Positions 1,046-27,239 of a stretch of DNA of 64,000 bases are shown one piece after another. Under the pieces are notes generated by a model. That model was given only the letters and a program-made list of their open reading frames with translations. It had not been told where the DNA came from and ran no database searches. The number at the start of each line of letters is the position of its first letter. The first letter of the stretch is position 1. The DNA is taken from the IMG/VR virus record IMGVR_UViG_3300032245_001860, positions 1 to 64,000 of that record. One strand, 5' to 3'. The position numbers and the translations under genes are program-made.

Positions 1046-1233
1046 AACCTGCATAAGTGACACTAAATCCCCTTATAACACGCTTATAAGGGGATTATTC
1101 TACTTAAATAATTTATTTGCAGCTCCTCCCCTTGGGGTGGTAGACCTACCACCCCAAAATATCCATGTCAAATAAAATAATTTTTCTTGCATCCCTTGTA
1201 TGAGGTGATATAATTCAGATTGAGGAAACCACT

Positions 1234-3219
1234 ATGATAGTTGATGACATGAGAGCCACAGTTTTGGTCAATGGAACGATGACAGAATCGTTCTTTACTG
1301 TAAAGCAAGAGAACCTTGCACATATCTTTTCTATTCTACGCAACAATTTGTATTCTGATAAGGCTGGCGCAATCATCCGTGAATATTGCACAAATGCCTA
1401 TGATGCTCACGTTCAAGCTGGCATCAAAGATACTCCAATTTCAATCAAGTGTCCAACATCATTCCACCAATTGCTTTGCATTCGTGACTATGGTTATGGT
1501 TTGTCAGAAGATGAGATTTTCAACATCTATGCATCCTATGGTGAATCCACAAAGCGTAACACAAATGACCAAGTAGGAATGATGGGTTTGGGTTCCAAGT
1601 CTGCATTCTCTTACACTGATTCATTCACCATCATATCTTACAATCAAGGTATGCAGAAAAATTACCTTGCATACATTGATGATTCTGGCATTGGTAAGGT
1701 CATGAAGGTAGAAGAGAATCCAACCACTGAGACTGGAATTGAAATTCAAATTCCTGTAGCACGTTTTGATTGTTACAAGTTTGAGAATGCCATCACCAAA
1801 CAATTGAAATTTTTCAGTCCAAAGCCTGTTATCAATCTCGCATATGTCCAAAGGTCTTTAGAAGAGAATCTCAATATTCACATCCATGGTGATGGGTACG
1901 ATATCATCAATTCCTACGACACACATTTTGTTGTGATGGGGAATGTTGCATATCCTTTTACCACTGAGACATTTGAGAATCACCCGCATTTCAAAGATGC
2001 AATTAACAGCTTAACTGAACATTCATTAAAAATTGTTCTGTATGCAAAGATAGGTGATGTAATACCATCTGCTTCCCGTGAATCTCTTGACTTATGTGAG
2101 AAGACCATCAATTGGATTGGTAATGCGTTAATCAATGTATCTGATGACGTTAAGCAAAACCTTGTCAGCCAAATGGATGCTTCCGACACAATCTGGAATA
2201 CAAAAGTAAGATTCTCAAATCTGAAATCCAAATTCCAAAGATTATTGACTGGCTACACAAAAGATGGCATTCTGTGTGATTCAAACCAGACTGATGTACC
2301 AAAGATTCCACTCATCACCGCCAAGAGACTGAATGAGAATAAGTTTGAGACTGTTGAGAAAATTTACAATACATCCCGGACTGTAATCTATGTTAGTAAA
2401 GGTGACGTAACATCTGGCTCAATCAAAAAGCGGATTAAGTTGGACAATCATTCATCTGATTTGTTGTATGCTGTTGAATGCAAAGATAGAGCCACATACA
2501 ATGAATTTATCAATCATCCTGAAATCATCGGCGCAAACATCATAGACCTTGCGACAATTGAACTACCAAAGATTGAACGTGAGAAAACAGCCTCCAATCA
2601 TGATGCTTATCAGTTTGTAGGTGACAGATATAACAATCAACCAAGAGATGCATGGCAAAAGACCCGTGTTAATTTCAAACTTGGAACAGGCGTATACATC
2701 AAGATTAGCAATTATAATGTCGAAGGCTTCTCTCCACATATGATGTACAAGGTACTTGAATCTCTTAAGGACTTGGGACATGAAATCACCTTGTATGGCA
2801 TTCGAGATAGTGATTCATCAAAATTGGGTGCTGGCTGGAAACACCTTAAAGTTTACGTGCAAGAGGTCATAGATAATTTGCCACAATCATTCAAGGATAG
2901 TGCTTCCAGAGGTTACATCCATGATTATATTGATATTGATACACGCTCTTTGTACGATTCATTTGCTCACTTAGATAATGACCCATTCAACTTTAAGGAC
3001 ATTGTAGACTTTGATAACTACAATTATGATGACACTAAAGCAATTCAAACGATAAGTTTGTTCATTAACTGTAATTTCAGATATGATTTGACAAAAGAGA
3101 AGCAAATTGTCAATGAATTGAAAGAATTACGGTCAAAGTATCCCTTAATTAAGTATACACAGATACATAGCGGTTCAATACCGTACATTAAGGAGTACAT
3201 TGAGGCTATGAACAGGTAG
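1234..3219 (+). CDS. rIIA: rIIA-like protein with N-terminal GHKL/HATPase domain
   Basis: LYSDK..IIREYCTNAYDAH, IRDYGYGLS and GMMGLGSKSAFSY motifs; directly upstream of rIIB-like gene. Confidence 0.88.
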   Translation: MIVDDMRATVLVNGTMTESFFTVKQENLAHIFSILRNNLYSDKAGAIIREYCTNAYDAHVQAGIKDTPISIKCPTSFHQLLCIRDYGYGLSEDEIFNIYASYGESTKRNTNDQVGMMGLGSKSAFSYTDSFTIISYNQGMQKNYLAYIDDSGIGKVMKVEENPTTETGIEIQIPVARFDCYKFENAITKQLKFFSPKPVINLAYVQRSLEENLNIHIHGDGYDIINSYDTHFVVMGNVAYPFTTETFENHPHFKDAINSLTEHSLKIVLYAKIGDVIPSASRESLDLCEKTINWIGNALINVSDDVKQNLVSQMDASDTIWNTKVRFSNLKSKFQRLLTGYTKDGILCDSNQTDVPKIPLITAKRLNENKFETVEKIYNTSRTVIYVSKGDVTSGSIKKRIKLDNHSSDLLYAVECKDRATYNEFINHPEIIGANIIDLATIELPKIEREKTASNHDAYQFVGDRYNNQPRDAWQKTRVNFKLGTGVYIKISNYNVEGFSPHMMYKVLESLKDLGHEITLYGIRDSDSSKLGAGWKHLKVYVQEVIDNLPQSFKDSASRGYIHDYIDIDTRSLYDSFAHLDNDPFNFKDIVDFDNYNYDDTKAIQTISLFINCNFRYDLTKEKQIVNELKELRSKYPLIKYTQIHSGSIPYIKEYIEAMNR

Positions 3220-3410
3220 GTTTCCTCAAATAATACCTGTTCAGAAGGGTGGAGCTTTTCCACCCTTTTTTTATTTGTCAACCCAGATGTGGGGTGGTAG
3301 TCTTACCACCCCAATGAGACAGATTGCAAATAAAATAAATTTTCCTATATAAAAAATATTTTGTTGCAGTGGTATAAAGAGATATGGTATGATTCTCTGT
3401 TAGCAAATTA

Positions 3411-4613
3411 ATGGAGAGAAAAATGGATAATATACCAGTCATTCACAACACCGACCCAGTATCAGGGTCTCTAACTGTATTTCTTGATGGCAAGCAATAC
3501 AAGATTTTTGTATCTGAGCCAAATTTCCAATCTGCTCTTACCGCATATAAAAGCAAAGACTGGGAATCTCTTCGCAATATTGTAAACCCTGCTGAAGCCT
3601 TCAAGAAACTCTATGCCAAATATGAGCAGATTGAGGTTAAGGATGGCAATGTCTTTGTCAGCGGTGAACCAATCTCTACCCTTGTCGCAAACCGAATCCT
3701 TGATTACTTGTCAATGGAACTTGACTGTGTCCCTGTATTCAAGTTTATCACCAAGTTGAATTTGAATCCAAGTAAACGTGCAGTCGATGAACTGTACACC
3801 TTCCTTGAGCATAAGTTCTTGCCAATCACTGAGAATGGTAATTTTCTTGCTTACAAGGCTTTACGCTCGGACTACACCGATGTTCACACTGGTAAATTTT
3901 TAAACACTGTAGATTCGGTGTTGGAAATGCCACGGAACAAAGTGGATGATAACAAAGAGGTAGGATGTTCTTACGGCTTCCATGCTGGCACTCTTGAATA
4001 CGCCAGAGATTTCCGACCTTCCAATGGTAAGTTGGTTGTAGTGGAAATCAACCCAGCAGATGTGGTTTCGATTCCGACTGATTGTCAATGTCAGAAATTG
4101 CGTACCTGCAAGTACAAGGTTCATTCCGAGTATGAGGTTCCGCTTGAAGACCTCACCTATGAATCACGCTACACCACAGAGTATGATGATGATGTAGACC
4201 GAGAATGGGATGATGATGGTAAATTTGCCTGTTCTGGTTGTGGATGGAATCGCCATATGTGTGAAGAGTGCGACTATTGTGTGGATTGTTGCGACTGTCC
4301 ACAAGATGATAATGGTTATGAAGAACCCGAAGGTGGCTGTATGGGTGACCCTGATGCACCAAAAATAGAAATACAGCTCGAATTGAATCTTGATAATAAG
4401 ATGACCTCAAATTGGGCAGATGCGAGATTTCAATATCTTGTAATGTTGCCTTGGCTTTATGCTCATCAACGTCCTGCTGTAGCCAATGCCTTGAGGCGAT
4501 TTTATGCTGATGTTGATGACCAGAATAAAATAAATCCTATATTTGCTATCCTTAAGCAATTCACATCTGATGAGGATGCTTATAAGATTTACAAGGAATT
4601 CACAAATTCATAA
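3411..4613 (+). CDS. rIIB: rIIB-like protein with Cys-rich/acidic C-terminal extension
   Basis: LNLNPS..AVDELYTFL, LPITENGNFLAYK, CSYGFHAG and VEINPADVVSIPTD..KLRTCKY motifs. Confidence 0.88.
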   Translation: MERKMDNIPVIHNTDPVSGSLTVFLDGKQYKIFVSEPNFQSALTAYKSKDWESLRNIVNPAEAFKKLYAKYEQIEVKDGNVFVSGEPISTLVANRILDYLSMELDCVPVFKFITKLNLNPSKRAVDELYTFLEHKFLPITENGNFLAYKALRSDYTDVHTGKFLNTVDSVLEMPRNKVDDNKEVGCSYGFHAGTLEYARDFRPSNGKLVVVEINPADVVSIPTDCQCQKLRTCKYKVHSEYEVPLEDLTYESRYTTEYDDDVDREWDDDGKFACSGCGWNRHMCEECDYCVDCCDCPQDDNGYEEPEGGCMGDPDAPKIEIQLELNLDNKMTSNWADARFQYLVMLPWLYAHQRPAVANALRRFYADVDDQNKINPIFAILKQFTSDEDAYKIYKEFTNS

Positions 4614-4772
4614 GAATTGTGATTTGTCAAGAGTATCCCCGGAGAAATCTGGGGATATTTTTTTATTTGAAGCTTTACCCTTGGGGTGATAATATTATCA
4701 CCCCAAATCTTTCATTAAATAACAAAAATAAATGTTTCAAACTGGCTTATTTTAGATATAATATGATAGAGT

Positions 4773-5423: not shown

Positions 5424-5485
5424 TGTATATGTTGCTGGTAATCACAAACTTGCCAGCAACATATTTTGATGGTATAATAGATTAT

Positions 5486-5566: not shown

Positions 5567-5570
5567 CTTT

Positions 5571-5642: not shown

Positions 5643-5803
5643 TTTCACTTGGATTGTTTCATGCCTTTCTTACCAAGTGAAAACCAATCCCCCTCTTTCA
5701 GGCAGAGGGGGATTTCCTTATTTATGGGGTTATAATATTATAACCCCAAGATCTTGTTCTAAATAAAATTTGCACAGATTTAATTTATGTGATATAAAAG
5801 GAT

Positions 5804-7274: not shown

Positions 7275-7438
7275 GAGTCAATATTGAAACAGAATGAGAG
7301 CTATCCCCCAGTTTAGTAGTGTTTTCTGGGGGATTTTTTATGCATGGGGTTATAATATTATAACCCCAATTCTCTTACTCAAAATAAAATTTGCATTTCA
7401 AGATATTGTGATATAATGAGCCATCAGAGGTAAATACA

Positions 7439-8315: not shown

Positions 8316-8383
8316 TGGTGGATAGCTTAAGTAGAGCAGAGGAACATAAGCCTTTGATATGGGTGCAAATCCCATTCCACCTT
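8316..8383 (+). tRNA. Degenerate tRNA-like element, CAT anticodon
   Basis: GGTGGA/TCCACC acceptor, ATGGG-TGCAAAT-CCCAT T arm, irregular anticodon arm. Confidence 0.5.
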
Positions 8384-8458: not shown

Positions 8459-8711
8459 TTGTTTCTGGTTGGTTGGTGTTTTGCATGTCCTATCTCTTCC
8501 CTCCATTAAAATTTCCAGAGAGAAATTATGGAGGGATTTTTTTATTTGAAAATCGAGCTTGGGGTGATTGAATAATCACCCCAATATTTCGAGATAAAAC
8601 ATACCACAATTGCCAGTTAAAGAATAAATTAGTTGATATAAATACACGCATTAGGTATACTATATTACGTGATGAAAATCACACAATGACAAAAGAAAGT
8701 CCTACAATAAA

Positions 8712-9071: not shown

Positions 9072-9230
9072 TTCTAAAGGGGAGAGTAAAATCTCCCCTT
9101 TTTTATTTGTCATGGCAAGCTGGGGTGATAATATTATCACCCCAAAAGAGAACAAATAATTTTAATTTTTTGTACCTAATTCTTTTACCAATCTCTTGCA
9201 AGTTATACTACATTATGTTATTATTAGTCA

Positions 9231-9802: not shown

Positions 9803-10644
9803 TTGACTATAATAGTATTGCAGTTCGCTGTAATACTATTTTTTTATAGGTATGTAATGAAGAAGATTCATATTTCCAATTTCAGGAAGAAGCATGGTGT
9901 AGAGTTGTTTGCACAAGTGTCAGAAGCAGTCAAGAAGTCTAACTGCGATAGTCATGTAATGAAGAATTCCTTTGTAAACATTTCAAAGATTATTCAACAG
10001 CTACCAGAAAATGAAATCAAAACCAAGTTTGTGAATTGGGCCTCAGGTTATGATTTCGCTGTTATTGATGTAGTGTAATTTATTTACAAGATCTTCATGG
10101 GGTGGTAAGATTACCACCCCATTTTTCTATGTCAAATAAATTTTTATGTGATACAATGTGCTATGAACAAACTTATGCATCTTACCAGTGAATTAGATTC
10201 GCACATCAGTATGGTTGATTTTTTTGAAACCCTTGAGAAATGTCATGAGTATGGCAAAGTGATAGTTCAAGACAAGCAAGGACAAAATTATAAAATTCAT
10301 TCTGTACAGGAAGATGACAATCTCAATACTATCTTGATGATAGTACCAGAGTATAATCCAGATGAAGATGAAGATTGGGAAGAATGAAACCTATTACAAT
10401 AAGAAAAACATTAGCCAGATTTGCTTTTTATGCAAGTGAAATTAAATCAGGTAAAGAACATAAGATGATATTGGAATCTATGGATTTTACTGAAGATGAT
10501 TTCCAATATATGATAGAGCAATCATTGAAAATCGCTAACAGTGATGATTATGATTTAGATGTTGTTCTCACTGACCACACGCACAAAAGTCCTATTGGTG
10601 GATGTTATATTTCAAAAGATGGTACCAATCTTGCATGGTTGTAA
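9803..10644 (+). CDS. Three small hypothetical genes (ending 10078, 10387 and 10644)
   Basis: Co-oriented ORFs with sigma70-like promoters; true starts likely downstream of the ORF-track starts. Confidence 0.55.
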
Positions 10645-12670: not shown

Positions 12671-12774
12671 TGGGGTGATAATATTATCACCCCAAGATCC
12701 TTTTAGCAAATAATTAATTTTTCTTGCATCAGTATACCATTTGTGATATAAAAGAGTATCGAAAGGTTACTACA

Positions 12775-13116: not shown

Positions 13117-13177
13117 TCACAAGGGGGATTGAAAAATCCCCCTTGACATACTTAATTATATCAGGTATCATTAACCC

Positions 13178-13450: not shown

Positions 13451-13587
13451 TCACATCCCTTGGCTTTTGTCAAGGGATATTTTTTATTTGTCAAGCTCTC
13501 CCTTGGGGTGGTAATCTTACCACCCCATTTTATTTTGTCAAATAAATTAATTTTTGTTGCAAGGTTAGTATATTGTGATATACTTTT

Positions 13588-13917
13588 ATGTGTAAGGAGA
13601 TGGAGATGGAACTTTCGATTCGTGGTATATTGACAGCCAACTTTGAGTTGACAATTGATGAAGCAGATTTTTCTGATGCTTGTGAGAGTGTAGAACTTGA
13701 CCCAGAAAAGTTCAAGAAATTCACTTTCGCACAATGGCAAAAACTCCGTGATGCTTTGATTGACACCACTTGCAACATGGAAAGTGAAATTGACTATGTG
13801 GAAATCCATGAGCAAAACACTGTGTCTGTGGATGAGATTCACATTGATGACACTGACAACATGACCATTGTGACTTATCAACATGATGGTAAAGTAGATT
13901 CAGTAGATATCCAATAA
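13588..13917 (+). CDS. Acidic hypothetical protein
   Basis: AAGGAG RBS, D/E-rich, followed by terminator. Confidence 0.65.
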   Translation: MCKEMEMELSIRGILTANFELTIDEADFSDACESVELDPEKFKKFTFAQWQKLRDALIDTTCNMESEIDYVEIHEQNTVSVDEIHIDDTDNMTIVTYQHDGKVDSVDIQ

Positions 13918-14198
13918 AGAAAGGATGGGTGGGATTTTCCCACCCTACTTTAATCAAATGTTCTTTGATGATTATCCTATAGTAATCTGGTTTGTTCGCA
14001 AAATCAAAAACAGTTATTGTTTATATGATTCTTGTGGGCAACTTGTAATGCGACGAGATGAAAAAAGAAAAAAAGACATATACCAATACTGTGAAGATAA
14101 TGGTATTGATTTACAAGAAGAATTCTAACCAGCTCAGACTGGTTTTTTTATTTGACAAGTGAATCTGGGGTGATAATATTATCACCCCAGAGGGTGGA

Positions 14199-14813
14199 TT
14201 ACCCACCCTCTTTTATAAAATCTTTTGAAATTACTTGATTGAACTTTCTTGGGTCATACCAGAAACATCCAAAACAAGTACCAAGATAGTTTTCGTTACC
14301 TGTAATCCAACCAGCAGAATAACCTAATCTTCTTGCATCATACCTTTTGTTTGTTTGTTCGCAGATATTACAATGTGTTCTTTTTGTATCATTGCAAGTT
14401 TTGTGTAAAGGTTGAAAATCATCTTCTTTTTGTTTGCTGATGTCTTCGTAAGTCTCAGGTGAATATCTACCATCCTTATGGTCACATTCTATTCGAGCGG
14501 CAGAATCTACAATTCTACATCTTTGTTTTTTTATGGATTTTCTAATATCACTTCGTATATTAGATTCTTTAGATTTATCTACAAAGCCATCAAGTTTTAT
14601 TGCAGTAAGTTTTCCACCAACAATAGTTTTTCTCAAAACATAGTCTTTGAGAGGCCCTCTGTCATCTTGTGCCCAACTACCATTTGTTGTATGGAAACTT
14701 ACACCAAAGTGATTCTGCAACTCTTCGAATGTTATCCATTCAGTTATTCCATCAACAGGCTTCGCATATTCAAAAAACATACGACCATATTCTGCTGGTT
14801 TTAGATTAGCCAT
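14199..14813 (-). CDS. HNH-type restriction endonuclease, NlaIII/IceA family
   Basis: IECDHKDGR, DFQPLHKTCNDTKR.HC..C, RYDA and C.GCFWYDP match the IceA1/R.NlaIII pattern; overlaps the MTase stop codon. Confidence 0.75.
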   Translation of the reverse strand: MANLKPAEYGRMFFEYAKPVDGITEWITFEELQNHFGVSFHTTNGSWAQDDRGPLKDYVLRKTIVGGKLTAIKLDGFVDKSKESNIRSDIRKSIKKQRCRIVDSAARIECDHKDGRYSPETYEDISKQKEDDFQPLHKTCNDTKRTHCNICEQTNKRYDARRLGYSAGWITGNENYLGTCFGCFWYDPRKFNQVISKDFIKEGG

Positions 14814-15510
14814 TTAGTTTACCGATTCTTTCTGTTGCTTTTGTAAAGTATGTTTCGTCCAACTCACAGCCAATGAATTTACGTTTGGTGTTATGACAAG
14901 CCACAGCACAAGAAGCAGAGCCAGCAAAACAATCCAAAACTAAATCACCTTCATTGGAATGTTTAGTAATTAAAGCTTGAAGTAGATTGAGAGGCTTTTG
15001 GGTAGGATGGAATCTATCTCTTTCATGACAGATTGCAAATTCATATATACCCTTATCATATTCGGAATGAAATGTTGGTTTCGAGCCTTTGATTGCAGTG
15101 AGAGCAATTTCTCTTGAATTAGTGAGGTAATTGATTTTCGAATTGATTGGAACTGGATTTGTCTTGACCCATTCTATAAATCTCAACTGCTTAAACTTAG
15201 CATCTTCAATCCATTTTTTAAGTGTTTCAATTTTCCAAAGGTCATAGAAACAAATAATCGTTCCACCGGGTTTTAGAATGCGATAACATTCTTCCATTAC
15301 CTTATCAAGAGCAAAAATCTCATTGTCCCATTCTCCAAACTCGTAGGACATTTTGAATCTTTCCACACCTTTTTCACCACAAGATTCAAAACCTGTAGGG
15401 CGAGAAATTGTATATGGTGGGTCAATCAAAACAAGATTGACACTTTTATCTTCTACTGTTGGCAAAAAATCCAAACAAGATTGATTTACCAGAGATATGT
15501 TTTCATTCAT
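14806..15510 (-). CDS. Beta-class N6-adenine/N4-cytosine DNA methyltransferase
   Basis: IDPPY, HPTQKP and VLDCFAGS motifs in beta order. Confidence 0.93.
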   Translation of the reverse strand: MNENISLVNQSCLDFLPTVEDKSVNLVLIDPPYTISRPTGFESCGEKGVERFKMSYEFGEWDNEIFALDKVMEECYRILKPGGTIICFYDLWKIETLKKWIEDAKFKQLRFIEWVKTNPVPINSKINYLTNSREIALTAIKGSKPTFHSEYDKGIYEFAICHERDRFHPTQKPLNLLQALITKHSNEGDLVLDCFAGSASCAVACHNTKRKFIGCELDETYFTKATERIGKLNG

Positions 15511-15588
15511 AATGAATTATACCATACGATATAGGATGCAAGAAATTAATTTTTTTATTTGACATCTGATCTTGGGGTGATAATATTA

Positions 15589-15759
15589 TCACCCCATAAA
15601 TAAAGAATCGCCAGAACTTTTATCCTGGCGATTTTTGTGCTTATCTTTTCGAGTGTATTTAGTTTTATCTTTAAACACTATGGGTCTTTGCCTACTTGCT
15701 CGCATCATTTCTGTTCCTGATGCAAGATTCAGCTCCTCAACATACTTTCTCTTTTTCAT
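15589..15759 (-). CDS. ArfA/BrfA-like alternative ribosome rescue factor, 56 aa (not in ORF track)
   Basis: AGGAG RBS; MKKRKYVEELNLASGTEMMRASRQRPIVFKDKTKYTRKDKHKNRQDKSSGDSLFMG; terminator hairpin lies inside the ORF before the stop. Confidence 0.65.
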   Translation of the reverse strand: MKKRKYVEELNLASGTEMMRASRQRPIVFKDKTKYTRKDKHKNRQDKSSGDSLFMG

Positions 15760-16069
15760 TTTGAACTCCTATCCAGCCATATGTTTCTGAGTGGTTTTTA
15801 AAATCTTCCACTAACTTATAGTATTCATTCTCGTATATTGTATACAAAGACTTGAATCTTTTTTGGTATTTTGTTTCTGATAATCTTTTTGCCATGTATT
15901 TGACAGTAGTACTACATAAATCCTCTGACATGGTAAAGCCTGTAATATCTTGCACTAAAATTTCATAATGATGAAAATGATTCCATTGCCCTAAACAATC
16001 ACCATTAGAAGTCATCCAGAAAACTTTCTTCATCTCTGCTCTCCCACTACAATATACCAAACTATACAC
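15737..16069 (-). CDS. Hypothetical protein (start likely MKKVFW)
   Basis: ORF in cassette, upstream of the ArfA-like gene. Confidence 0.55.
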   Translation of the reverse strand: MYSLVYCSGRAEMKKVFWMTSNGDCLGQWNHFHHYEILVQDITGFTMSEDLCSTTVKYMAKRLSETKYQKRFKSLYTIYENEYYKLVEDFKNHSETYGWIGVQNEKEKVC

Positions 16070-16196
16070 AAATCTGCAACAAAATTAATTTATTTGACAT
16101 TATGTCTTGGGGTGATAATATTATCACCCCAGATTCAATATTTGTCCATAAAATAATATAATGATACAATAGGTCATCAACTATAAGGAGATTCTT

Positions 16197-16884
16197 GTGT
16201 TTGACCCATCCAACATTGTCAACCCAGAGTATTGGTTTGACAAGCCGCTTATATATACAAACCATGCCAGAGAAAGATGTTTAGAACGTGCAATATTGTT
16301 TTATGATTTTATTCCGATAAATTCTAAACTTATGGATTGCGAAAAAGATAACAACAATAACATCACTTTTTTATGTTTCAAGATAAATGAACGAGGAGAT
16401 TGTTTTATTGTAACTCATGATGGTGTGGTAATTACAGTGTTCAACTGCCATGATAGAGGTTTTAATAAATACACTCATAGAAAGAACTTAAGAAGGCAAC
16501 ATAAGAATAATCTGATTGCTTATTTTGGAGATAGCACACACAGATTAATCCCAAGGAAATTTGCCAAGAGATGAGGACAAAATGAATATAAATCTTACTG
16601 AATTTGGAGACTGTATAGTTGTTAGAGGTACATATAAAGAAACTGGCCATTTGTCTGTTTTGATTACAGATTTAGAAAATAAAGTATTGGCACAAATTTC
16701 AAAAGATTTACCTAATGCATCTACATTATCTGAGGATGAATTTTATTTTGATTCAAAAGAATACAGTGGTTTATCTTCTCAACTTTTAGCGTTACCAGAG
16801 TTTACAAAAACTACAAGGAAAACTAAATCTTCAAGTTTGTTTGATGATACTGTTTATTATATTTGGAAATTTACTGGAGCATAA
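16197..16884 (+). CDS. Two hypothetical genes (16197-16574 and ~16582-16884)
   Basis: AAGGAG RBS with GTG start; first has YTNHARER...VVITV motif; terminator at 16885-16912. Confidence 0.6.
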
Positions 16885-16913
16885 AAAAATCCCTCTTCGG
16901 AGGGATTTTTCTT

Positions 16914-17120
16914 TTAACTGTACTTTATATTCTCTACTAAAACATAAAACTCCATGGGTGTTTTGTTCAATACATTACACAACTTAACCAAGTTTTTAGA
17001 ACTTGGAATCCTCTGACCTGATAACCAGCTACTAACATGAGGCTGAGAAGTGCCTACTCTTTCTGCTATTTCCTTCTGAGTTAAACCATTCTGTAGTTCC
17101 GATATAAAAAATCTTTTCAC
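16914..17120 (-). CDS. XRE-family HTH transcriptional regulator
   Basis: GLTQKEIAERVGTSQPHVSSWLSGQRIPS; GGAGG RBS before GTG at 17120. Confidence 0.88.
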   Translation of the reverse strand: MKRFFISELQNGLTQKEIAERVGTSQPHVSSWLSGQRIPSSKNLVKLCNVLNKTPMEFYVLVENIKYS

Positions 17121-17275
17121 ATTACAAACCTCCAAGCATAATAATACCACAATATACCACTGTAGACAAATATTATTTATGGGGTGATAATATTATCACC
17201 CCAAGCTGAGTAAATAAAGTAAATTCCATTATGACATATGTGATATAATTGGATATCAAAGACTGGGAGAATCAA

Positions 17276-17488
17276 ATGGATAAAAGGATGGAAGTTATCA
17301 TCTTACAAAAAGGTATGACACAAAAAGAGATAGCAGAGAGAGTGGGAGTACATCAACCCAAAGTTTCAGAATGGCTTAGAGGAGTAAGAATTCCAAATTC
17401 GAAGTTATTATATAAACTTGCTGAAGTCTTAGAAGAAGAACCAGCAGTGTTAGTAGATAAGTTAAAGCAAATATCAGAGTTAGAATAG
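17276..17488 (+). CDS. XRE-family HTH transcriptional regulator (paralogue, divergent)
   Basis: GMTQKEIAERVGVHQPKVSEWLRGVRIPN; GGGAG RBS. Confidence 0.88.
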   Translation: MDKRMEVIILQKGMTQKEIAERVGVHQPKVSEWLRGVRIPNSKLLYKLAEVLEEEPAVLVDKLKQISELE

Positions 17489-17517
17489 AAAATCCCCCAG
17501 AAATGGGGGATTTTAGT

Positions 17518-17829
17518 TTAGTCCATGATTACGCTGAGTCTGTCTTCTTTTGTCTTTATATGACCAGAAAACCAGCCATTTTTAGAAGGCTCAATCTCAG
17601 ACACAGATTCAACCAGATTCAATTGGTGCTTGTACACCTCTTCAAGTGATACAATCTGCTGTTGGATGTTTTCTGCTATTGCTTTGTTTATTGCAAGCAT
17701 CTCAATCTTGATATCTTGAAGAGCGACAATCTGATTGCGAGTTGACAAAAGAATCTCACGAAGCCTGTCCGAATTTTTAGTAGTTCTCATAACTACCTCC
17801 TTATGATAGAAGTATATCACAATATACAA
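17518..17829 (-). CDS. Hypothetical coiled-coil protein (start likely MRTTKN)
   Basis: AAGGAGG RBS. Confidence 0.6.
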   Translation of the reverse strand: MYIVIYFYHKEVVMRTTKNSDRLREILLSTRNQIVALQDIKIEMLAINKAIAENIQQQIVSLEEVYKHQLNLVESVSEIEPSKNGWFSGHIKTKEDRLSVIMD

Positions 17830-17955
17830 GCCTCACCACTAAATTAATAATTTATTTTTGTATTGAATCTGGGGTTATAATATTATAACCCCAAGAGCTA
17901 TTATGCAAATAAAAAAATATCCCTTGACTTTCGTCAAGGGATATGGTTGTGGAGT

Positions 17956-18156
17956 TTAGTAATCGTCTCCGTCATAACCACCATAGTCTTCATCGGTTCC
18001 GAAACCAGCAGAAGCCAATGCATCAGCATCCATCCAAGATTCATCCTCATAAGGCTCATCGCATTCCTGTTCTTCAAAGTCCTCTTCCCAATCTCTTGGG
18101 TCGAGGTCAACGCTTGGGAAAATTCTTGCTTCCAGTTCTGCTTCAGTGTAATCCAT
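17956..18156 (-). CDS. Very acidic 66-aa protein
   Basis: AAGGAG RBS; MDYTEAELE...DADALASAGFGTDEDY. Confidence 0.7.
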   Translation of the reverse strand: MDYTEAELEARIFPSVDLDPRDWEEDFEEQECDEPYEDESWMDADALASAGFGTDEDYGGYDGDDY

Positions 18157-18187
18157 CTCTATCTCCTTACTCCTAAAGTATACCACA

Positions 18188-18538
18188 TTATACTGAGGTG
18201 TCAACTGTATCCCAGCCAGCTGGAGCACCTTTCTTCCAATCAATTTCTTTTGTATCATTCCAAGTTGCAGGGCAATTAGATTCTACGAATAAAGCAAAGT
18301 CTGATGCCTCTTCGTCATCTCTAAGGTAATATACTACCGCTTCGTAGTATGACCCGTAATCGCTACCATCTTCACGCTTAATGCCAAACCAAGCACCTTC
18401 AGGAACATTAAGAAATATGTCCTTGAGCATCTGTACATACTTGCGAACCTCTGCTACATGAGCAGAATAATCATGCATATCCACACATTCTTCTTCGCAT
18501 GGGTTTGGTCCAAGGTAAAACCAGTTCTTTTTATCCAT
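18188..18538 (-). CDS. Hypothetical phage protein (leaderless start)
   Basis: LGPNPCEEEC and DYGSYYEAVVYY motifs; TATACT-N6-ATG. Confidence 0.7.
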   Translation of the reverse strand: MDKKNWFYLGPNPCEEECVDMHDYSAHVAEVRKYVQMLKDIFLNVPEGAWFGIKREDGSDYGSYYEAVVYYLRDDEEASDFALFVESNCPATWNDTKEIDWKKGAPAGWDTVDTSV

Positions 18539-18625
18539 GACGTAAGTATACCATAATATACTACCTGTTCAAGAAAAATTAATTTATTTGACAAAATTAT
18601 TTGGGGTGATTTTTATATCACCCCA

Positions 18626-19100: not shown

Positions 19101-19198
19101 TTACAGAATAAGTATACCAGATTATATCAGCGATGCAAATTTATTTAATTATTTGACAAAAGGATCTGGGGTGATAATATTATCACCCCAAGGTACAG

Positions 19199-19981: not shown

Positions 19982-20114
19982 AGGAAAAGTATATCATAAT
20001 ATACCAACGATGCTACAAATATTTAATTATTTGACAAATTATTTTGGGGTGGTAATAATACCACCCCAATTTGATGATGATAAATAAAAAAGAGGGAGCT
20101 TTTGCTCCCTTTCA

Positions 20115-20322: not shown

Positions 20323-21919
20323 CTACTTTGCGTAATCTATGCTTTGGAATGTTGACTGCTTGAACATATCTGCTATCTTGTATGCCTCTGAAAGAAATGC
20401 ATAGATAGCACTTGAAAGAACCAAAAAACTACTTTGGTCATATGTCAGGTCTTTTGGCAAGATTTGATAGCACTGTTCATTTCCATTATTGAGAAATGTA
20501 TAAACTGTGCCTGAAATCTGCAATTTTTGTTTATTATATTGAACTTGAATTTGTCCAACATCATGAGTAATGACTAATACTAAATCTTGAGTGGCAAAAG
20601 AATCTATTGATTCTTTAACAAATGTTTCAGAGTCATAAATAAACTTTGCATTATTACTGTAAATCATTAGATTACTCTTCTCTTTTCATTCTCATCAGCG
20701 TTACTTATCATACAGCACAAAAAATAATAAAACAATACTGCAAAACAAGCAAGCATACCATTACTAAACAACCAGTATGCGGTTTTGCCATCACCTGTAA
20801 AAATCCACTCAAACAAACCATACACCAATGAAAGAGGAGTGGCACAAGCAAGAATGGTAAGAATGTTTTTCAATACTTTCAGACCTGTTGTGGTGTAAAG
20901 TCTCATATGGGCAAAAAAGACAAGCAATCCGCCACCCCAAACCACAACATACAATAATCTATTAACCATATCTAAAGTCATCCTGCTACCTCCCAATTTT
21001 CTGCCATTACATCTTCTGTCTTCAGAGTATAATATGCCCAATTAACTACATCACCATTTGAAAAAATAATCTTGAATTTCAATCGCTCATTTTCTAACTT
21101 GACAAATAGAATTGTGCTTTTATGTTCATATGGTTTTGTTCTTGTGATTGTTTGACCATCACGTAATGCTGGTAATACCTGTTCAAGTTTCATGATTAGA
21201 GTATACCATAGTATACTATCGTTGCAACAAAAATTAATTTATTTGACAAGATTATTTGGGGTGGTATTATTACCACCCCAAAAAGAAAACCCCAAGATAA
21301 ATTTCCTGGGGTTTTATATTATGCTTCTACGTTTACATACTTGGCTTCGGGATACCAGTGTTGAACCATCAGGACAGCTTCTTTTGGTTCCTGATCATCA
21401 AGATTATTTACAAAGTCTTTCAACAATGTAAAAAACTTGTATCTGGAAACCAATGTCAATGAAGTGTTTTCATCACCTGTAGTGAACTTTTCCAAAAACT
21501 GTTCCTGTTCATCATCACCCAATTCAATACTTTCAAAGATATATGAAGCATTCCAATAACCAACAGTTTCAACCGCCATTATTTCACCTCAACTTTCTTT
21601 GACAACATTCCAAATGCGATAGACAACAACGCCAAAGTTACAAGCACAGACATTACAATACTATCCATTACTTTGCCTCCTCTGCAAACGGGTCACCAAT
21701 CTCATCCTGTTCATCAAAAGCCTTGCCAATCGCTTCCAACTCTGCATCAAGTTTTGCAAGGTCTTCGGTAATCCAAGCCAACCTTTGTTCTGGTGTTGCA
21801 ATCTCGACTGAAAGAGAGGCTGAAACTTGGCACTTGAATGCCGTCTTTGCTACTTCACACTTGATAATGTAATCTTGATATGTCATCTCTATCCCCTTAC
21901 ACTTAGAAGTATACCACAA
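20323..21919 (-). CDS. Small hypothetical genes (20323-20667, 20667-~20981 membrane protein, 20978-21193, 21319-21579, 21668-~21886)
   Basis: Coupled minus-strand ORFs inside palindrome-delimited cassettes. Confidence 0.55.
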
Positions 21920-21994
21920 TATACTACCATTGCAAGAAAAATTAATTTATTTGACAAAATACTTTGGGGTGATATCAATATCACCCCAAATAAC

Positions 21995-22824: not shown

Positions 22825-24043
22825 TTATTTCCACATATTTTTAGGCTTGGTAGACCTTTCACCGGGCATATAGAATTTCTTAATCTTATTCTTGTTGTAT
22901 GTCCAGCGTCCAACCAATTCGCCTAAGGGATTTTCATCAGTAGCCTTGTAAATAGCAAAATACCAGCCTTCAAGCGCATATTTCTTTGCTGTTTCCTTAG
23001 CCTGAATCAAAGTGGTGCAAGGCGTTAAAGATTTGGTTTTATCCCAAGTTTCGCCGATAACGATTCTGTATAGTGTCATAGGTTAAGTATATCAGTTTAT
23101 ATCAAAAATGCAAGGAAAATTATTTTATTTGACATAAAAAAATGGGGTGGTTTTTATACCACCCCAAAATCCTGCCAACAATATAAATTATTAGCAGGAT
23201 AGAACTTTTTTCTAATTTACTCCAGTTTCCAGTCTGACGGAATATGATTTGTTTTTAGCCCATTGCATTCCAAACAAATCAAAAATTCCAATTACTAATA
23301 ACGCAATATGCCATTCTTCAAACTGACTATGAATATCAACTACACTGCCAAAAGTAAATTTGGTGTTTTCATAAAAGATTGAAAACATCAGAGCTGCAAC
23401 AAAAACCTGAACATACAAACATAACTTTTCATAACTCTTTAACTTCATAACTTTTCTCCTACACAGGTAGTATACCACAATATACTACCTGTGTTAATTA
23501 ATTTTAAGGAAGATTTGCGACAAAGTCACTCAGGAAGGAATCGTAATTTCTTTTAGAGTTATCCTTAAGAATACGCTCTATGGTCATGCGACTTTCGAGT
23601 AATTTGTAATGGGAATCATTGTTTTGTTTTTCGATGAGTTTTTCGATGGATTCTTTAAGCTCTTCTGACTTAACATAGAATGAAGCATCAATATCATCCA
23701 GTGTTGCGATAAAGTCTTCAGCAACCAAACCACCATGTTGAGATTTCTTGCCATGAGAGAGACGAGCAACCTCAGTAACAGGAACAAGCATCCAATCAAT
23801 CTTAGAATCAAGTGTGCCAATTCCAAGCAGATGAATTGCCATGTTGATAGTTTCCATCTGATTGAAGTTTTGCACAGAACTGTTAAGGTCAGTTACAGAA
23901 ACTTTCAATTGATAATCTTCACCATTGTAAACAAAATATTTAATCTTGTTCTTGATAATAAGAGAGTCACCCAAAATTTCTTTGAGCGATTCAAGACCAT
24001 AAGTGTTAATGCTTCGGTTTTTCATAACTGGATTGTATCTCAC
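22825..24043 (-). CDS. Hypothetical genes (22825-23079, 23212-~23448 membrane protein, 23504-~24025)
   Basis: Each has its own extended -10 promoter. Confidence 0.55.
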
Positions 24044-24061
24044 TTTATATCAGAGCGCAAG

Positions 24062-24113: not shown

Positions 24114-24254
24114 ACACTTATTATATCAAAATATATTTATCATGCAAATTAATTTATTTCTTTATTCTGGGGTTATAATATTATAACCCCATGAGCTGTT
24201 TCGCAAATAAAAAAATATCCCTTGACAAGTGCCAAGGGATGTGATAGTGGAGTT

Positions 24255-24851
24255 TTAGTCTTTGAAGCGGTCTGCGTTGGTCTCGATGACTCGCTTGGCT
24301 TCCGCTACCGTCATGAGGTCAATCAATGCTTTTTCAATGACCTTTTCCATCTGTTCAATTTCAAAGTCACCATTCTTTGTGTAGATGGCGTTTGTGCCGT
24401 ATCGGGTTGTATTGAATCCGACATTGTTCTTGAAATTGTTTACCACAATATGGAAATTGCGGATGAGGTCTTCGTACACTTCATCATTGTTTGAGGAGAT
24501 GAAGGTAAGGTGCGTAAAGTGTTGATTCTTGCGGTCACGGGTATTCTCATACCAGTAATTCTTGTGGAACCACTTGCGAGATGCGTCTGAACCCTTCTCG
24601 GCATGAATGCGGGTAACCAAGAGAATTGGCGTACCATTGTAAGAGAACAAGTAATCGCCAGTATGCTTGAAATCTAAAATACCCAAGCCACCATCAAACA
24701 TATCTGCGGTAATCTTGTTTGTGCCTGTGAGAAGGCTGTTAAGTTCATTGTACTTTGTTACCAGTACGCTGTTGACAACAAACAAGCTATCTTGTTGAGC
24801 CTGAGATTGAGGGGTTGTTGCACCGTGAGAACCAATTTGAATACCTTGCAT
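24255..24851 (-). CDS. Hypothetical protein
   Basis: 198 aa, AAGGAGG RBS, sole gene of its cassette. Confidence 0.7.
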   Translation of the reverse strand: MQGIQIGSHGATTPQSQAQQDSLFVVNSVLVTKYNELNSLLTGTNKITADMFDGGLGILDFKHTGDYLFSYNGTPILLVTRIHAEKGSDASRKWFHKNYWYENTRDRKNQHFTHLTFISSNNDEVYEDLIRNFHIVVNNFKNNVGFNTTRYGTNAIYTKNGDFEIEQMEKVIEKALIDLMTVAEAKRVIETNADRFKD

Positions 24852-25071
24852 CGTATTCCTCCTTGTTGATAGTATACCACATTATCAACCCTGTGCAAGA
24901 AAAAACTTTTTATTTGACAGGTGATTTTTGGGGTGGTACAACTACCACCCCAATCCAGGCTTTGTAAATAAAAAAATATTTTTTATTTTTTCTTGACAAA
25001 AACCTGGAAAGATGGTAGCTGAAAAATATATTAAAGCATCCCTTGACTTTCATCAAGGGATGTGGTGCAGG

Positions 25072-25952
25072 TCAGGCGCATACCTCACGTTTGCGCAGAA
25101 CATTAACCAATCTGCTGTTTTCCGCTTCAATGTCACCTCTTGAGATAAGGTTCTTAATTGCATTCTCAGGCGTATCATCGCACAGGTTAGAATGAATCTC
25201 AAGAGTGTTACCGAAACTGTAAAGGTATTGAATTGGGAAGCGATACAGTTGATTGTGTACACGCTCTCGCATTGAATCAGAGAAAGGTTGATAATACATA
25301 CGGTCTTCCTTGCCGTTTCCAAGTTTGGCATATGCCATTGCCTTTCCAACGGATTGAAAGAACTCCAAAGCCCAAAGGAAGGTATCGACAATGCCTTCAT
25401 ATGCAAAGACATACAGTTCGCTTGAATTCCAAGCGCAGGCAATACAATCCTGCCCGTTGGCTGTTCGACCTACAAAGAGAGACTTGACCGACGATGATTG
25501 GAAATTCTTGATTTCCCAGAGGTGCATAGTGTTTTCCATGGCTTAAATATACCACCTTATACCAGCAGTTCGCAAGTAATTAGGTGTGAAAAAATACACT
25601 AAAAATAAATTTGACAAACTGAAAAAAGTGTGATAGAAAAATATTTAATTTGACATTTTTTCTGGGGTGGTATTTGTACCACCCCAATTGAGGCTTTGCA
25701 AAATAAAAAAATAAATTTAAAAATCCCTTGACATCTGCCAAGGGATATGGTAGCTGTCTACTCTGCGTAGATTTTTAGTTGATTGGTTTCAGGAATAAAC
25801 CTTGTTTCAAATTCATCATTGTTGATGAAATCTGCAATTTTTGCATTGAATTCTTCTTCGGTCATACCTTCTGTGTAACCAAGGTCAGACATGGAGAGTT
25901 CCCAGAATCGATTGGTAGAAAAGGTGAGTTCTACTTGTGTATCTTTGTTCAT
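25072..25952 (-). CDS. Two single-gene cassettes (25072-25539 and 25758-25952)
   Basis: Leaderless-type starts, ATCCCTTGAC-type terminators. Confidence 0.6.
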
Positions 25953-26965
25953 GTCTATATATTACAGTATAAAGTGGTATGATGTCAAATTTATTAATGT
26001 AAGAATTAATAACTAATTAGCCCTTGCATCTGATTATATAAAGTGGTATATTATGTACATGAACGATATGTACCGACCAACAGCCTACGTCATCGAAGCC
26101 GGTATGCAAAAAGCATATGTGCTAATCCTCCACAGAATCATCAAGAACAGCATCAAGAATAAATTTGTTCTTGCTGAAGCAGACCGCATACTTGAAGAAT
26201 CAAACACTGCCTATGAACGTGCAAAGGCTAAAGCAATAGAGATGTAGGCTCTATCATATAACCAGAGTTTTGTCAAGTAAAAAATTATTTTATTTGATAA
26301 AACTTTGGGGTGGTTTGTGTACCACCCCAAAACCCCTAATGCAATATAAATTTTACATTAGGGGTTTTTATTTACTAAGGGTAAAGTATGTAACCTACTA
26401 AACCATAACGACGTAGACAATGTGTAATTCCTGCCATGGAATTCGTTGTTGCCAATAGCTCACCATTTGGGTGATATAACTCATACAGCATATTTCTGTA
26501 TTTGACTGTGCCTGTTTTCATAACAGGCACATTATATCATTTTAGAATGTTACTTGGCAACAATTCCCCTTTGTGTATAGAATTTACTTCCATCATTGAG
26601 AATCCACTCTGTGTTATATTGGCGAGCATACTTCTCACCCAGTTCTTGTGCATTGCTACCAGATGCAAGCAACAATCCATTCCGGAATGCAGAGAATTTC
26701 ATCTTTGGCATATTGGTGACAAAGGTAACAATAATCTTGTCTGTAGTGTTCATGTCAATAGTATACCACAATATACTATCTAAACAAATTAAATTAACTT
26801 GCTGTGGATCCATTGCAATCGTTATATAAGATGGTATACTTACTCTATGAACATAATCATCTCCATCATCGGCATCATCTTGAGTGCTATTCTATTGCTG
26901 GGTACTATCACAATCAACAAAGAAAAGTAATTTGCAAAGTCTATATAAGGTGGTATACTTAACCT

Positions 26966-27136
26966 ATGAACGAAAACGATGACCCAATGTTTACAATGTT
27001 CGTCTCCCAAGCCCTTCAGGAACTTGCCAAACAAAAGCCTGATGTGTCGCAAGAAGACCTCTACGAAGAGGCTATTGAACTTGCATACGAGCGATGGGAT
27101 TCCTACTGCGAATCACAATACTTTCAGGGAGAGTAA
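26966..27136 (+). CDS. Small acidic 56-aa protein (not in ORF track)
   Basis: TGG-TATACT-N6-ATG; MNENDDPMF...YFQGE. Confidence 0.55.
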   Translation: MNENDDPMFTMFVSQALQELAKQKPDVSQEDLYEEAIELAYERWDSYCESQYFQGE

Positions 27137-27239
27137 AATCTCCCTACCACACAATCTCTTTCTTGTCAAATTAAATTATTTTATTTTCAAGAAAGGGATT
27201 GGGGTGATAATATTATCACCCCATAATACAAGATATAAT

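Follow-up and report, generated by a model that had tools for sequence, protein, structure and literature searches.

The closest described counterpart to the locus analyzed here is the PeSL system of T4-like phages, in which GGGG...CCCC stem-loops that act as terminators (PMC2839356) separate early-gene cassettes, and indels and minicircles arise between them (PMC2839356, PMC4122927). We examined a window comprising bases 1-64000 of IMGVR_UViG_3300032245_001860, a 316-kb contig from an uncultured jumbo phage. This phage carries the same perfectly symmetric 24-bp palindrome at every boundary between small, self-expressed early-gene units, at which relatives have gained, lost, swapped and inverted units much like PeSL cassettes. 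In contrast with PeSLs, however, the palindrome is a hairpin-capable element separate from the terminator, and its center repeatedly flips.

The initial annotation had described 26 copies of TGGGGT-xxT-N6-Axx-ACCCCA, and this observation was confirmed. The pattern matched 26 times, compared to 0 in 100 shuffles, and relaxing it added only a tRNA T-arm. The arm and center counts (GGT x10, GAT x12 and TAT x4, with AATATT x13) were also as described. All copies in the contig lie within 1133-27223, although a close relative has one more site 460 bp upstream of window base 1 and none in the 8.3 kb before that. Oriented contexts show an intrinsic terminator, followed by TTATTTG(A/T)CA, 8-11 nt, the palindrome, 8-11 nt, TGTCAAATAAA, an AT-rich tract, TTGCAA, 16-17 nt, and TGnTATAMT. 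A complete module is found at 13455-13584 (+), with a terminator at 13455-13478, an outer box at 13484-13493, the palindrome at 13504-13527, a second outer box at 13536-13546, a -35 element at 13557-13562 and a -10 element at 13579-13584. The six central bases had been described as freely variable, but symmetry extends inward, with pair 10/15 formed in 64 of 74 distinct sites and pair 11/14 in 39 of 74. The element is therefore a 10-bp stem with a 4-nt loop, and the truly free core is 0-4 nt in 70 of 74 sites.

The palindromes delimit about 25 cassettes, with genes mostly on the + strand up to 14166 and mostly on the - strand after it, forming two convergent arms. Palindrome 1 (1133-1156; arms GGT, center AGACCT), whose orthologues are flipped, has a terminator to its left and the rIIA promoter to its right. 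Palindrome 2 (3290-3313; GGT, AGTCTT) lies between rIIA (1234-3219) and rIIB (3411-4613), which are separate cassettes spanning 1234-4613 (+). Palindrome 3 (4682-4705; GAT, AATATT) is followed by a gene that a relative lacks, with homology ending at base 4706, and palindrome 4 (5725-5748; TAT, AATATT) is downstream of tRNA-Leu/Lys. These are followed by palindromes 5 (7345-7368; TAT, AATATT), 6 (8560-8583; GAT, TGAATA), for which 5 orthologues have the same orientation and 3 are flipped, and 7 (9121-9144; GAT, AATATT). Palindromes 8 (10098-10121; GGT, AAGATT), which is followed by a T-run and is flipped in the relative, and 9 (12671-12694; GAT, AATATT), which directly abuts the stop codon of the upstream gene, have no separate terminator. 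Palindrome 10 (13504-13527; GGT, AATCTT) belongs to the module detailed above, and palindrome 11 (14166-14189; GAT, AATATT) marks the convergence point, with terminators on both sides and no promoter.

Palindrome 12 (15573-15596; GAT, AATATT) forms the right border of a restriction-modification (R-M) cassette at 14199-15510 (-), composed of an IceA/NlaIII-family endonuclease (14199-14813) and an N6/N4 DNA methylase (14806-15510). Palindrome 13 (16108-16131; GAT, AATATT) lies between divergent promoters, as does palindrome 14 (17180-17203; GAT, AATATT), which occupies the center of the 98-bp spacer between two divergent Cro-like HTH genes. Palindromes 15 (17870-17893; TAT, AATATT) and 16 (18602-18625; GAT, TTTTAT) follow, the orthologues of the latter carrying GGT arms with other centers. 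The remaining copies are palindromes 17 (19167-19190; GAT, AATATT), 18 (20045-20068; GGT, AATAAT), flipped in the relative, 19 (21257-21280; GGT, ATTATT), 20 (21965-21988; GAT, ATCAAT), flipped in the relatives designated L046 and L153, 21 (23143-23166; GGT, TTTTAT), 22 (24168-24191; TAT, AATATT), 23 (24929-24952; GGT, ACAACT), flipped in the relative, 24 (25663-25686; GGT, ATTTGT), 25 (26306-26329; GGT, TTGTGT), for which 4 orthologues have the same orientation and 2 are flipped, and 26 (27200-27223; GAT, AATATT), where the array ends. L046 lacks the cassette between palindromes 24 and 25. Thus, sites are not restricted to the terminator/promoter junctions originally described as typical, but also occur at terminator/terminator and promoter/promoter junctions.

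To determine whether the symmetry of the arms is under selection, we turned to relatives from metagenomes, which add about 340 further sites, although these are not independent samples. A scan of all loci using sequence alone found 258 canonical sites, 2 with one mismatch, 59 with two, 1 with three and 19 with four, and all 78 sites with two or four mismatches were compensated in the opposite arm. Among 74 distinct sites, 9 of 10 pairs showed double-sided changes, none showed a one-sided or wobble change, and 98.2% of cells were paired, compared to 0 of 500 shuffles. Mixed arms were never observed. Two more distant relatives, L108 and L119, hold 12 and 14 sites with new arms, all of which are perfect, with several variants coexisting in one genome and the same module context, and here too nine of ten pairs covary. 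These results indicate that the arms are under real compensatory constraint.

It is possible that such symmetry reflects a stem-loop acting in RNA as a terminator, processing site or stabilizer, given that sites lie downstream of genes, that three copies are followed by a T-run, and that PeSL stem-loops are themselves terminators. However, 23 of 26 sites lack a T-run and most follow a separate terminator, sites 16108 and 17180 lie upstream of both flanking promoters, where nothing transcribes them, no G-U states occur in about 340 sites, and an Rfam search found only tRNAs. We therefore regard this reading as very unlikely. As single-stranded DNA, the elements are predicted to fold at -8 to -10.2 kcal/mol into the 10-bp stem with a 4-nt loop.

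A role as a transcription signal also appears improbable. The site might be a hairpin promoter for a virion RNA polymerase, as in phage N4, whose early promoters are small extruded hairpins, or alternatively the outer TTGACA box and the TGnTAATAT core might form two face-to-face sigma70 promoters. The spacing from outer box to core is 16-17 bp, several sites (14152-14179, 9107-9134, 13541-13514 and 10083-10111) score 9-10 of 12 with an extended -10, and T6, G7, T9 and A10 are conserved. On the other hand, GGT-arm sites have poor -10 hexamers, a promoter does not explain covariation at positions 1, 2, 4 and 5, N4-type recognition is loop-specific whereas here the loops vary and flip, strong canonical promoters already follow most sites, and symmetric firing would drive antisense transcription into the upstream genes.

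A further possibility is that the palindrome is a duplex operator for a dimeric phage regulator that switches off or insulates all early units, by roadblock or promoter control, with cassette exchange as a by-product of the repeated site. The best candidates for site-binding proteins are the HTH_3 (Cro/XRE-type) proteins encoded at 16914-17150 (-; 78 aa; E-value 4e-15) and 17249-17488 (+; 79 aa), paralogues that are 57% identical and transcribed divergently across site 17180. This pair flanks a site, either divergently or in tandem, in most lineages examined. Positions G2, G3, G4, G7 and T9 are nearly invariant, pointing to sequence-specific protein contact as well as structure, symmetry at pairs 10/15 and 11/14 goes beyond what a hairpin strictly needs, the core orientation is neutral, as expected for a spacer between half-sites, and the sites are confined to the early region. 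Moreover, 9-N-9 operators such as CIRCE/HrcA exist, as do small HTH repressors of strong early anti-defense promoters (Aca proteins). However, independent half-site recognition predicts that single-arm variants are commoner than symmetric double variants, whereas the opposite was found (2 compared to 59). Varying positions are always changed on both sides, and several arm variants coexist in one genome while the HTH recognition helices stay the same. The distance to the -35 hexamer also varies (+22, +30 or +50), and one site has no promoter at all. In L108 and L119, the nearest canonical-arm site is 0.7 to 5.5 kb from the HTH pair, although a variant-arm site lies between the two L108 genes. 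Finally, the model does not explain the family-specific flipping described below, and on balance we consider it unlikely, though it remains the strongest alternative.

The initial annotation had named, as a test of cassette shuffling, whether breakpoints between strains fall inside the palindrome, and we found that the end points of indels, replacements and inversions between relatives fall at the sites. The R-M slot is filled, empty or occupied by a different 1562-bp cassette in relatives, with homology stopping at the palindrome. Among 69 non-redundant junction pairs with one homologous flank, homology ends cluster at the site, with 23 at +25 to +27. In one lineage, the 5.1-kb block 13504-18625 is inverted, with its end points on palindromes 10 and 16, and identity steps from 99% to 80% within 100 bp of site 16108. 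Nevertheless, crossover points are spread from -45 to +82 across the roughly 130-bp module, and cassette order is largely conserved down to about 70% identity, so that exchange is occasional.

Comparison of orthologous sites also revealed that the central 2-6 bp sit in either orientation, with 17 flipped and 21 the same. Of 20 pairs whose flanks are at least 99.5% identical, 5 were flipped, and the flips were strictly local. In contrast, 29 other hairpin-capable inverted repeats of the same region showed 0 flips compared to 76 in the same orientation. One explanation for both the symmetry and the flips is that the sites are functionless relics kept symmetric by templated correction during replication, as template switching at quasi-palindromes is known in the T4 rII genes and in E. 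coli. However, other perfect inverted repeats of similar stem length never flipped, the elements persist at orthologous boundaries down to about 70% identity with conserved G-rich arms, and by our rough estimate a correction rate comparable to the flip rate would leave many asymmetric sites, yet only 3 in about 340 were found. This explanation is thus improbable.

The interpretation offered in the initial annotation, an integron-like, possibly undescribed system for capturing or shuffling early or anti-defense genes, was partly supported. The units behave as cassettes, and the region is rich in small genes of unknown function and includes the R-M cassette, which is present or absent between relatives. 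The integron-like label was not supported, as each cassette carries its own sigma70-type promoter and terminator, cassettes occur in both orientations, and the sites are perfect palindromes with a conserved sequence as opposed to imperfect attC folds with extrahelical bases. The absence of mixed arms also argues against routine exchange through the 6-bp center, the suggested dif/pdif-like geometry. It is possible that a dedicated enzyme encoded elsewhere in the genome recognizes the folded or duplex palindrome to excise, insert and invert cassettes, leaving flips as its footprint. Fast, family-restricted flipping, end points lying in some cases exactly at the palindrome edge with the arm variant traveling with the incoming cassette, the site-bounded inversion, and the behavior of the palindrome as an indivisible unit favor this idea, and selection at the level of a mobile cassette would explain the strict upkeep of perfect hairpins. 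However, no integrase, HUH nuclease, protelomerase or other recombinase was found in the 64-kb window or in the 8.3 kb upstream in a relative, crossovers are spread and synteny is largely conserved, and no recombinase is known to invert a 2-6 bp core within a single site, leaving this reading doubtful.

Based on the data presented above, we tentatively favor, with a probability of roughly 45%, the view that the 24-bp element is a DNA-level hairpin- or cruciform-forming boundary marker, rather than an RNA element or plain operator, joining autonomous early-gene units in a hyperplastic region of the phage genome. The data directly establish that perfect intrastrand complementarity of the 10-bp G-rich stem is maintained by compensatory change while the arm sequence drifts, that one element sits at every unit boundary whatever its type, that relatives differ by deletion, replacement, homologous exchange and inversion of units with end points in the module centered on the palindrome, and that the core flips fast and only at these elements. 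What we infer is that the palindrome extrudes in vivo, helped by its AT-rich center, AT-rich flanking boxes and negative supercoiling behind strong promoters, and that it is then cut or copied as a branched structure by a junction-processing activity, which would produce the flips and make the site a local recombination hot spot. No junction resolvase or hairpin-binding protein was identified in the 64 kb of the 316 kb examined, and no known mechanism cleanly explains a core flip that spares other hairpins. Additionally, a benefit through evolvability is second-order selection that would not by itself purge single-arm mutants to about 1%, implying some role in every infection, and a boundary or insulator role is likely, although inferred from sequence alone. 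In this view, because the site reads the same on both strands, any two copies could pair in either direction, so that the general phage recombination system could delete, insert, swap or invert units without disturbing neighboring expression, making this a PeSL-type shuffling system in which a dedicated symmetric palindrome would serve as the joint.

The array described in the initial annotation was confirmed copy for copy, as the reported 24-bp palindrome pattern matched 26 times and no shuffled sequence gave a single match, while a looser pattern added only a tRNA T-arm. The window is the first 64 kb of IMGVR_UViG_3300032245_001860, a 315,852-bp viral contig, and a scan of all IMG/VR contigs for the general pattern returned, for this contig, only stretches inside 1-34052, indicating that the family is confined to the first 27 kb of a 316-kb genome. 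A close relative, IMGVR_UViG_3300032326_002117 (84-96% identical), has one more site 460 bp upstream of window base 1 and none in the 8.3 kb before it. Single hits in other viral contigs are attributed to chance, since none of these contigs holds two family palindromes. To determine whether the palindrome might be a repeat of a host genome, 185,579 species genomes were scanned, giving 10 unrelated matches, 9 of them arm-asymmetric, and one 5-copy repeat in a Devosia MAG. In the latter (Devosia sp. MAG RYN_484), five contigs (L157, L160, L161, L163 and L164) of one high-GC MAG carry an identical repeat holding an arm-asymmetric match, with GGT on one side and ATC on the other, which is an unrelated multi-copy element. 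A host repeat was accordingly rejected. A literature search for jumbo-phage intergenic palindromes found nothing relevant.

The region starts with rIIA and rIIB and holds five tRNA genes, about 45 small ORFs that mostly have no family, two Cro/XRE-type HTH genes and a restriction-modification pair. Rfam 15 reported only five tRNA matches at the gathering threshold in 1-29000, one of which, at 8316-8383 (+) directly upstream of tRNA-Met (39.4 bits, gathering score 29), was not listed by ARAGORN. No isolate phage is close: megablast of both halves of the array against 50,697 phage records found nothing, and rIIA is at most about 31% identical to any record, with the best isolate hits coming from varied phage groups and the core genes lying outside the window. 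The first ORF of the window, at 56-1045 (+), encodes a DUF932 protein of 329 aa and is cut by the contig start; in the relative (locus L087, 8458-9810) the gene is 450 aa and begins 308 bp upstream of window base 1. The relative also has a second rIIA-like gene, a UvdE-like endonuclease and an Ogg-like glycosylase further upstream. Beyond the array, three consecutive ORFs of 997, 909 and 905 aa at 34141-42563 (+) have no Pfam or PHROG match, and nearby are a GH108 lysozyme (42976-43938), two PcfJ-like proteins (44135-47680) and a prepilin-type DUF1559 protein (48181-49116), the last belonging to a family typical of Planctomycetes and Verrucomicrobia, which may hint at the host. A run of sugar- or nucleotide-modifying genes at 49963-55513 (+), comprising kinase-like, HAD phosphatase, NAD-dependent epimerase/dehydratase, WavE-like, C-methyltransferase and FkbM methyltransferase genes, could represent a glycan or DNA-modification pathway.

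Read in the direction of transcription, a typical unit boundary consists of a variable intrinsic terminator with its T-run, the outer box TTATTTG(A/T)CA, 8-11 nt, the palindrome, 8-11 nt, TGTCAAATAAA and an AT-rich tract, and then TTGCAA, 16-17 nt and TGnTATAMT, the promoters and terminators being called from consensus matches; the stretch 13455-13584 is an example of such a module. Genes run on the + strand up to 14166 and mostly on the - strand after it. The spacing between the outer boxes and the palindrome is fixed, but that from the palindrome to the -35 hexamer is not, being about +22, +30 or +50. Site 14166 lies between two convergent terminators and has no promoter, sites 16108 and 17180 lie between divergent promoters, and only 3 of the 26 copies are followed by a T-run, most being preceded by a separate terminator. 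The element therefore marks boundaries of every type and is neither a terminator nor a fixed-distance promoter element, and we consider a role as a transcription signal very unlikely. A half-site logo from 255 distinct contexts showed that positions 10 and 15 are A and T in 90% of cases, and as single-stranded DNA the element is predicted to fold into a 10-bp stem with a 4-nt loop at -8 to -10.2 kcal/mol, whereas pairing of the two outer boxes was not predicted in 64-nt folds. A MITE-like element was also rejected, as the 8-11 nt spacers between the boxes and the palindrome are not conserved between copies. Other hairpins were also observed in the array. A second repeated family, ATCCCTTGRC-N4-GYCAAGGGAT, which contains CCCTT on both strands, serves as the terminator in several cassettes (13455-13478, 17917-17944, 24217-24240, 25037-25062 and 25723-25746, and also in the more distant relative L108). 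At 13120-13145, a stem-loop, CAAGGGGGATT-GAAA-AATCCCCCTTG, lies right after a stop codon and overlaps a TTGACA -35 hexamer, which is the classic layout of the promoter-early stem-loop (PeSL) of T4-like phages, inside a cassette and without a family palindrome.

To determine whether the symmetry of the palindrome is under selection, an exact search for the commonest 24-mer in metagenome contigs was used to collect 69 loci totalling 376 kb. In these, the arm triplets paired GAT with GAT 156 times, GGT with GGT 102 times, TAT with TAT 30 times and a fourth variant, TAA with TAA, 6 times, and different variants were never mixed. A scan that used sequence similarity only, with no pairing requirement, gave 258 sites with no mismatch to the canonical arms, all perfectly paired; 2 sites with one mismatch and one pair broken; 59 with two mismatches, all compensated; 1 with three mismatches and one pair broken; and 19 with four mismatches, all compensated. 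Three further hits with four mismatches were unpaired, two of them one recurring coding-like sequence, and were taken as noise. The only three family sites with one unpaired arm position (L046:2790, L133:9391 and L123:3053, in three loci; A·C, C·A and T·C) may be recent mutations that have not yet been purged. Two more distant relatives, L108 and L119, carry 12 and 14 sites whose arms differ at positions 1, 4, 5, 6, 8 and 9, all of them perfect palindromes with nothing at 7 or 8 of 9 pairs, and several variants coexist in one genome, all in the same box-and-promoter context. On 74 distinct sites, 9 of 10 pairs showed changes on both sides and none showed a one-sided (wobble) change, with 98.2% of cells paired, which no shuffle or slid control came near; part of that alignment was chosen with a pairing criterion, so that the similarity-only scan is the unbiased count, and the metagenomic sites are related by descent and are not independent. 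Symmetry fades toward the center, pair 9/16 being formed in 100% of sites, 10/15 in 86%, 11/14 in 53% (twice the expectation) and 12/13 in 30% (no enrichment).

The rarity of single changes compared to double changes is the signature of pairing, rather than of two independently read half-sites. The absence of G·T states, together with the untranscribed sites between divergent promoters, places the constraint on DNA and not on RNA, and an RNA element is the least likely of the alternatives, with a functionless relic also considered very unlikely. Positions G2-G4, G7 and T9 stay nearly invariant, so that sequence-specific contact by some protein is likely as well. The most obvious candidates for such a protein are two 57%-identical HTH_3 proteins, encoded at 16914-17150 on the - strand and 17249-17488 on the + strand, that are transcribed divergently across site 17180 and lie next to a site in most lineages. 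However, a plain duplex-operator model for this pair does not explain the compensatory pattern or the coexistence of arm variants with unchanged recognition helices, and we regard it as an unlikely alternative. Mimicry of host transcription factor sites was likewise rejected. GTGAT-N6-ATCAC has the wrong spacing for CRP, and although the inner 14 bp of sites with GAT or TAT arms and center AATATT (e.g., 4682-4705 and 5725-5748), TGATAAT-ATTATCA and TTATAAT-ATTATAA, correspond to the Fur and PerR 7-1-7 boxes of Bacillus with the central base missing, GGT sites do not fit, and the resemblance was judged to be a coincidence.

At orthologous sites, defined by both distal flanks, the asymmetric core was found as its exact reverse complement 17 times and unchanged 21 times, and among pairs whose flanks are at least 99.5% identical, 5 of 20 were flipped. 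The flips are strictly local, and the adjacent spacers are unchanged in flipped pairs, on which ground inversion between the outer boxes was rejected as their cause. As a control, we took 29 other perfect inverted repeats in the same 29 kb, with arms of at least 8 bp and asymmetric spacers of 3-9 nt, most of them terminators. Their orthologues in the same loci showed 76 unchanged spacers, 38 changed, 31 of different length and 0 flipped, and the loops of the second hairpin family likewise never flip. Flipping is thus a property of this family and not of hairpins in general, which argues against generic replication template switching and implies some DNA transaction specific to the palindrome. 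No known mechanism that we could identify fits cleanly, and cleavage of an extruded cruciform followed by hairpin-transfer-like repair is an inference on our part.

We subsequently mapped the cassette interiors of all loci onto the window by best hit, since single-linkage clustering of cassettes collapsed because of the shared modules, and found a mostly conserved order with variable slots. The restriction-modification cassette (14190-15572), which holds an IceA/NlaIII-family endonuclease (E 1e-28) and an N6/N4 DNA methylase (E 3e-35) at 14199-15510 on the - strand, is present in some genomes and absent in others, which then have a single site there. In locus L153 it is replaced by an unrelated 1562-bp cassette, with homology to the window stopping 8 bp before one palindrome and resuming at the first base after the other, and the arm variant travels with the incoming DNA. 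Locus L046 lacks two cassettes that are bounded by sites. In one lineage the block 13504-18625 is inverted, with end points on palindromes 10 and 16 of the array, which is possible because any two copies of a palindrome are inverted repeats as well as direct repeats. Adjacent cassettes can also differ sharply in identity to the same relative, one example going from 99% to 80% with the step 50-100 bp from site 16108. To locate the end points, which had been proposed beforehand as a test of the cassette interpretation, we examined 69 non-redundant junction pairs in which one flank is homologous and the other is not, using gapped anchoring because ungapped comparison is confounded by small indels. 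Homology ended at about -109 in 1 pair, at -45 to -8 in 19, inside the palindrome in 5, at +25 to +37 in 27 (23 of them at +25 to +27) and at +43 to +82 in 17. Crossovers are therefore centered on the palindrome but spread over the module, as expected for short-homology recombination and matching what was reported for PeSLs (PMC2839356). Other indels between the window and its relative end at gene boundaries away from any site.

No recombinase, HUH nuclease or resolvase domain was found in the window or in the 8.3 kb upstream in the relative, a search that leaves out the remaining 252 kb of the contig. An HNH endonuclease gene (28393-28788, - strand) lies just beyond the last palindrome, in a segment (28332-28878) that is replaced by 2.4 kb of other DNA in the relative, and is probably a mobile homing-endonuclease gene; a second HNH gene lies at 31780-32730. 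A dedicated structure-specific recombinase is thus an unlikely alternative on present evidence, but the family-specific flip-flop keeps alive the possibility, which we also consider unlikely, that the palindromes are substrates of an as yet unidentified enzyme acting on the folded (hairpin or cruciform) site, encoded elsewhere in this jumbo-phage genome or carried in the virion. Its cut-and-rejoin cycle would flip the core and move self-expressed early or anti-defence cassettes in either orientation between co-infecting genomes, and it would represent a phage counterpart of the integron, working on perfect, strand-neutral hairpins.

The interpretation offered in the initial annotation was partly supported, but its integron-like label was not. 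As in an integron, there is an array of about 1-kb cassettes with accessory or defence-related content, separated by palindromic sites whose structure matters more than their sequence. However, attC sites are imperfect palindromes of variable sequence with extrahelical bases that select one strand, whereas perfect 9-10 bp arms with a conserved sequence were found in about 99% of sites; integron cassettes lack promoters and share one orientation, whereas every unit here has its own promoter and both orientations occur; and the intI/attI/Pc platform that integrons require was not found in the sequence searched. REP/BIME elements are also short, multicopy intergenic palindromes with compensatory changes at the ends of transcription units, but they are imperfect, transcribed, spread genome-wide, and carry a conserved 5' tetranucleotide and are linked to a RAYT (HUH) transposase gene, while no conserved bases directly flank the palindrome and no HUH domain was found in the sequence searched. 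The arm-N6-arm geometry of the dif/pdif and loxP/FRT-type tyrosine-recombinase core sites is shared, but Xer sites have two different 11-bp arms around a 6-bp center, whereas the arms here are identical inverted copies rather than XerC/XerD-specific, and exchange through the center would create mixed arms between GAT and TAT sites that share the center AATATT, of which none occurs in about 340 sites. The flip/flop hairpin termini of parvovirus and poxvirus telomeres, and loop inversions at chloroplast hairpins, similarly show a short asymmetric core between perfect inverted arms in both orientations at high frequency, but those are terminal hairpins or slow, generic events, in contrast with 26 internal positions of a phage genome at which neighboring hairpins do not flip. 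Finally, the early promoters of phage N4 are small GC-stemmed extruded DNA hairpins upstream of early genes that act at the DNA level, but N4 has three such hairpins, with 5-7 bp stems and sequence-specific 3-nt loops used by a virion RNA polymerase, whereas here the loops vary and flip and sigma70-type promoters are present.

The closest described system is the PeSL cassette of T4-like myoviruses (Arbiol et al. 2010, PMC2839356; Comeau et al. 2014, PMC4122927), in which a G-run/C-run stem-loop with an AT-rich tract and a sigma70-like early promoter flanks small ORFans in hyperplastic regions next to rII-type early genes, and indels and minicircles arise between copies. The array shares the composite module, as seen in the oriented contexts of the 26 sites, the setting in a hyperplastic region of small ORFans next to rII-type early genes, the transcriptionally self-contained units (as predicted from sequence), the indels and replacements between close relatives that end in or next to the modules, and the spread of crossovers within them. 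It differs in that the conserved palindrome is separate from the variable terminator that precedes most copies, whereas the stem-loop of a PeSL is itself the terminator of the upstream gene, that its 24-bp sequence is near-identical over hundreds of copies and perfectly symmetric with compensatory drift, that it also marks terminator/terminator and promoter/promoter boundaries, that it supports inversions, and that its core flips; in addition, it is found in a 316-kb uncultured phage. Our favored explanation, to which we assign a probability of only about 0.45, is that the palindrome is a DNA hairpin or cruciform-forming boundary element that would serve as an orientation-free joint for cassette exchange by general recombination and would be processed in vivo. 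The compensatory symmetry, the placement at boundaries of every type, the exchange end points and the family-specific flips are seen directly in the sequences, while formation of the folded structure in vivo, its processing and its function as a joint are inferred from sequence alone, without expression or structural data.

PeSLs were proposed in 2010 as the device that shuffles accessory genes in T4-like phages, and the authors themselves raised the question of whether their G-run stem-loop is merely a patch of homology or a recognized structure (PMC2839356). In this phage group, the terminator function and the conserved palindrome are physically separate, and the palindrome shows textbook compensatory evolution at the DNA level and carries a fast flip-flop signature specific to this family, making the question directly testable with synthetic DNA and with existing metagenome reads. 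The palindrome also gives a simple sequence marker for locating the early, accessory and anti-defence gene region in an abundant group of uncultured jumbo phages, and further suggests that orientation-free joints may be a general way for phages to trade self-contained gene units.
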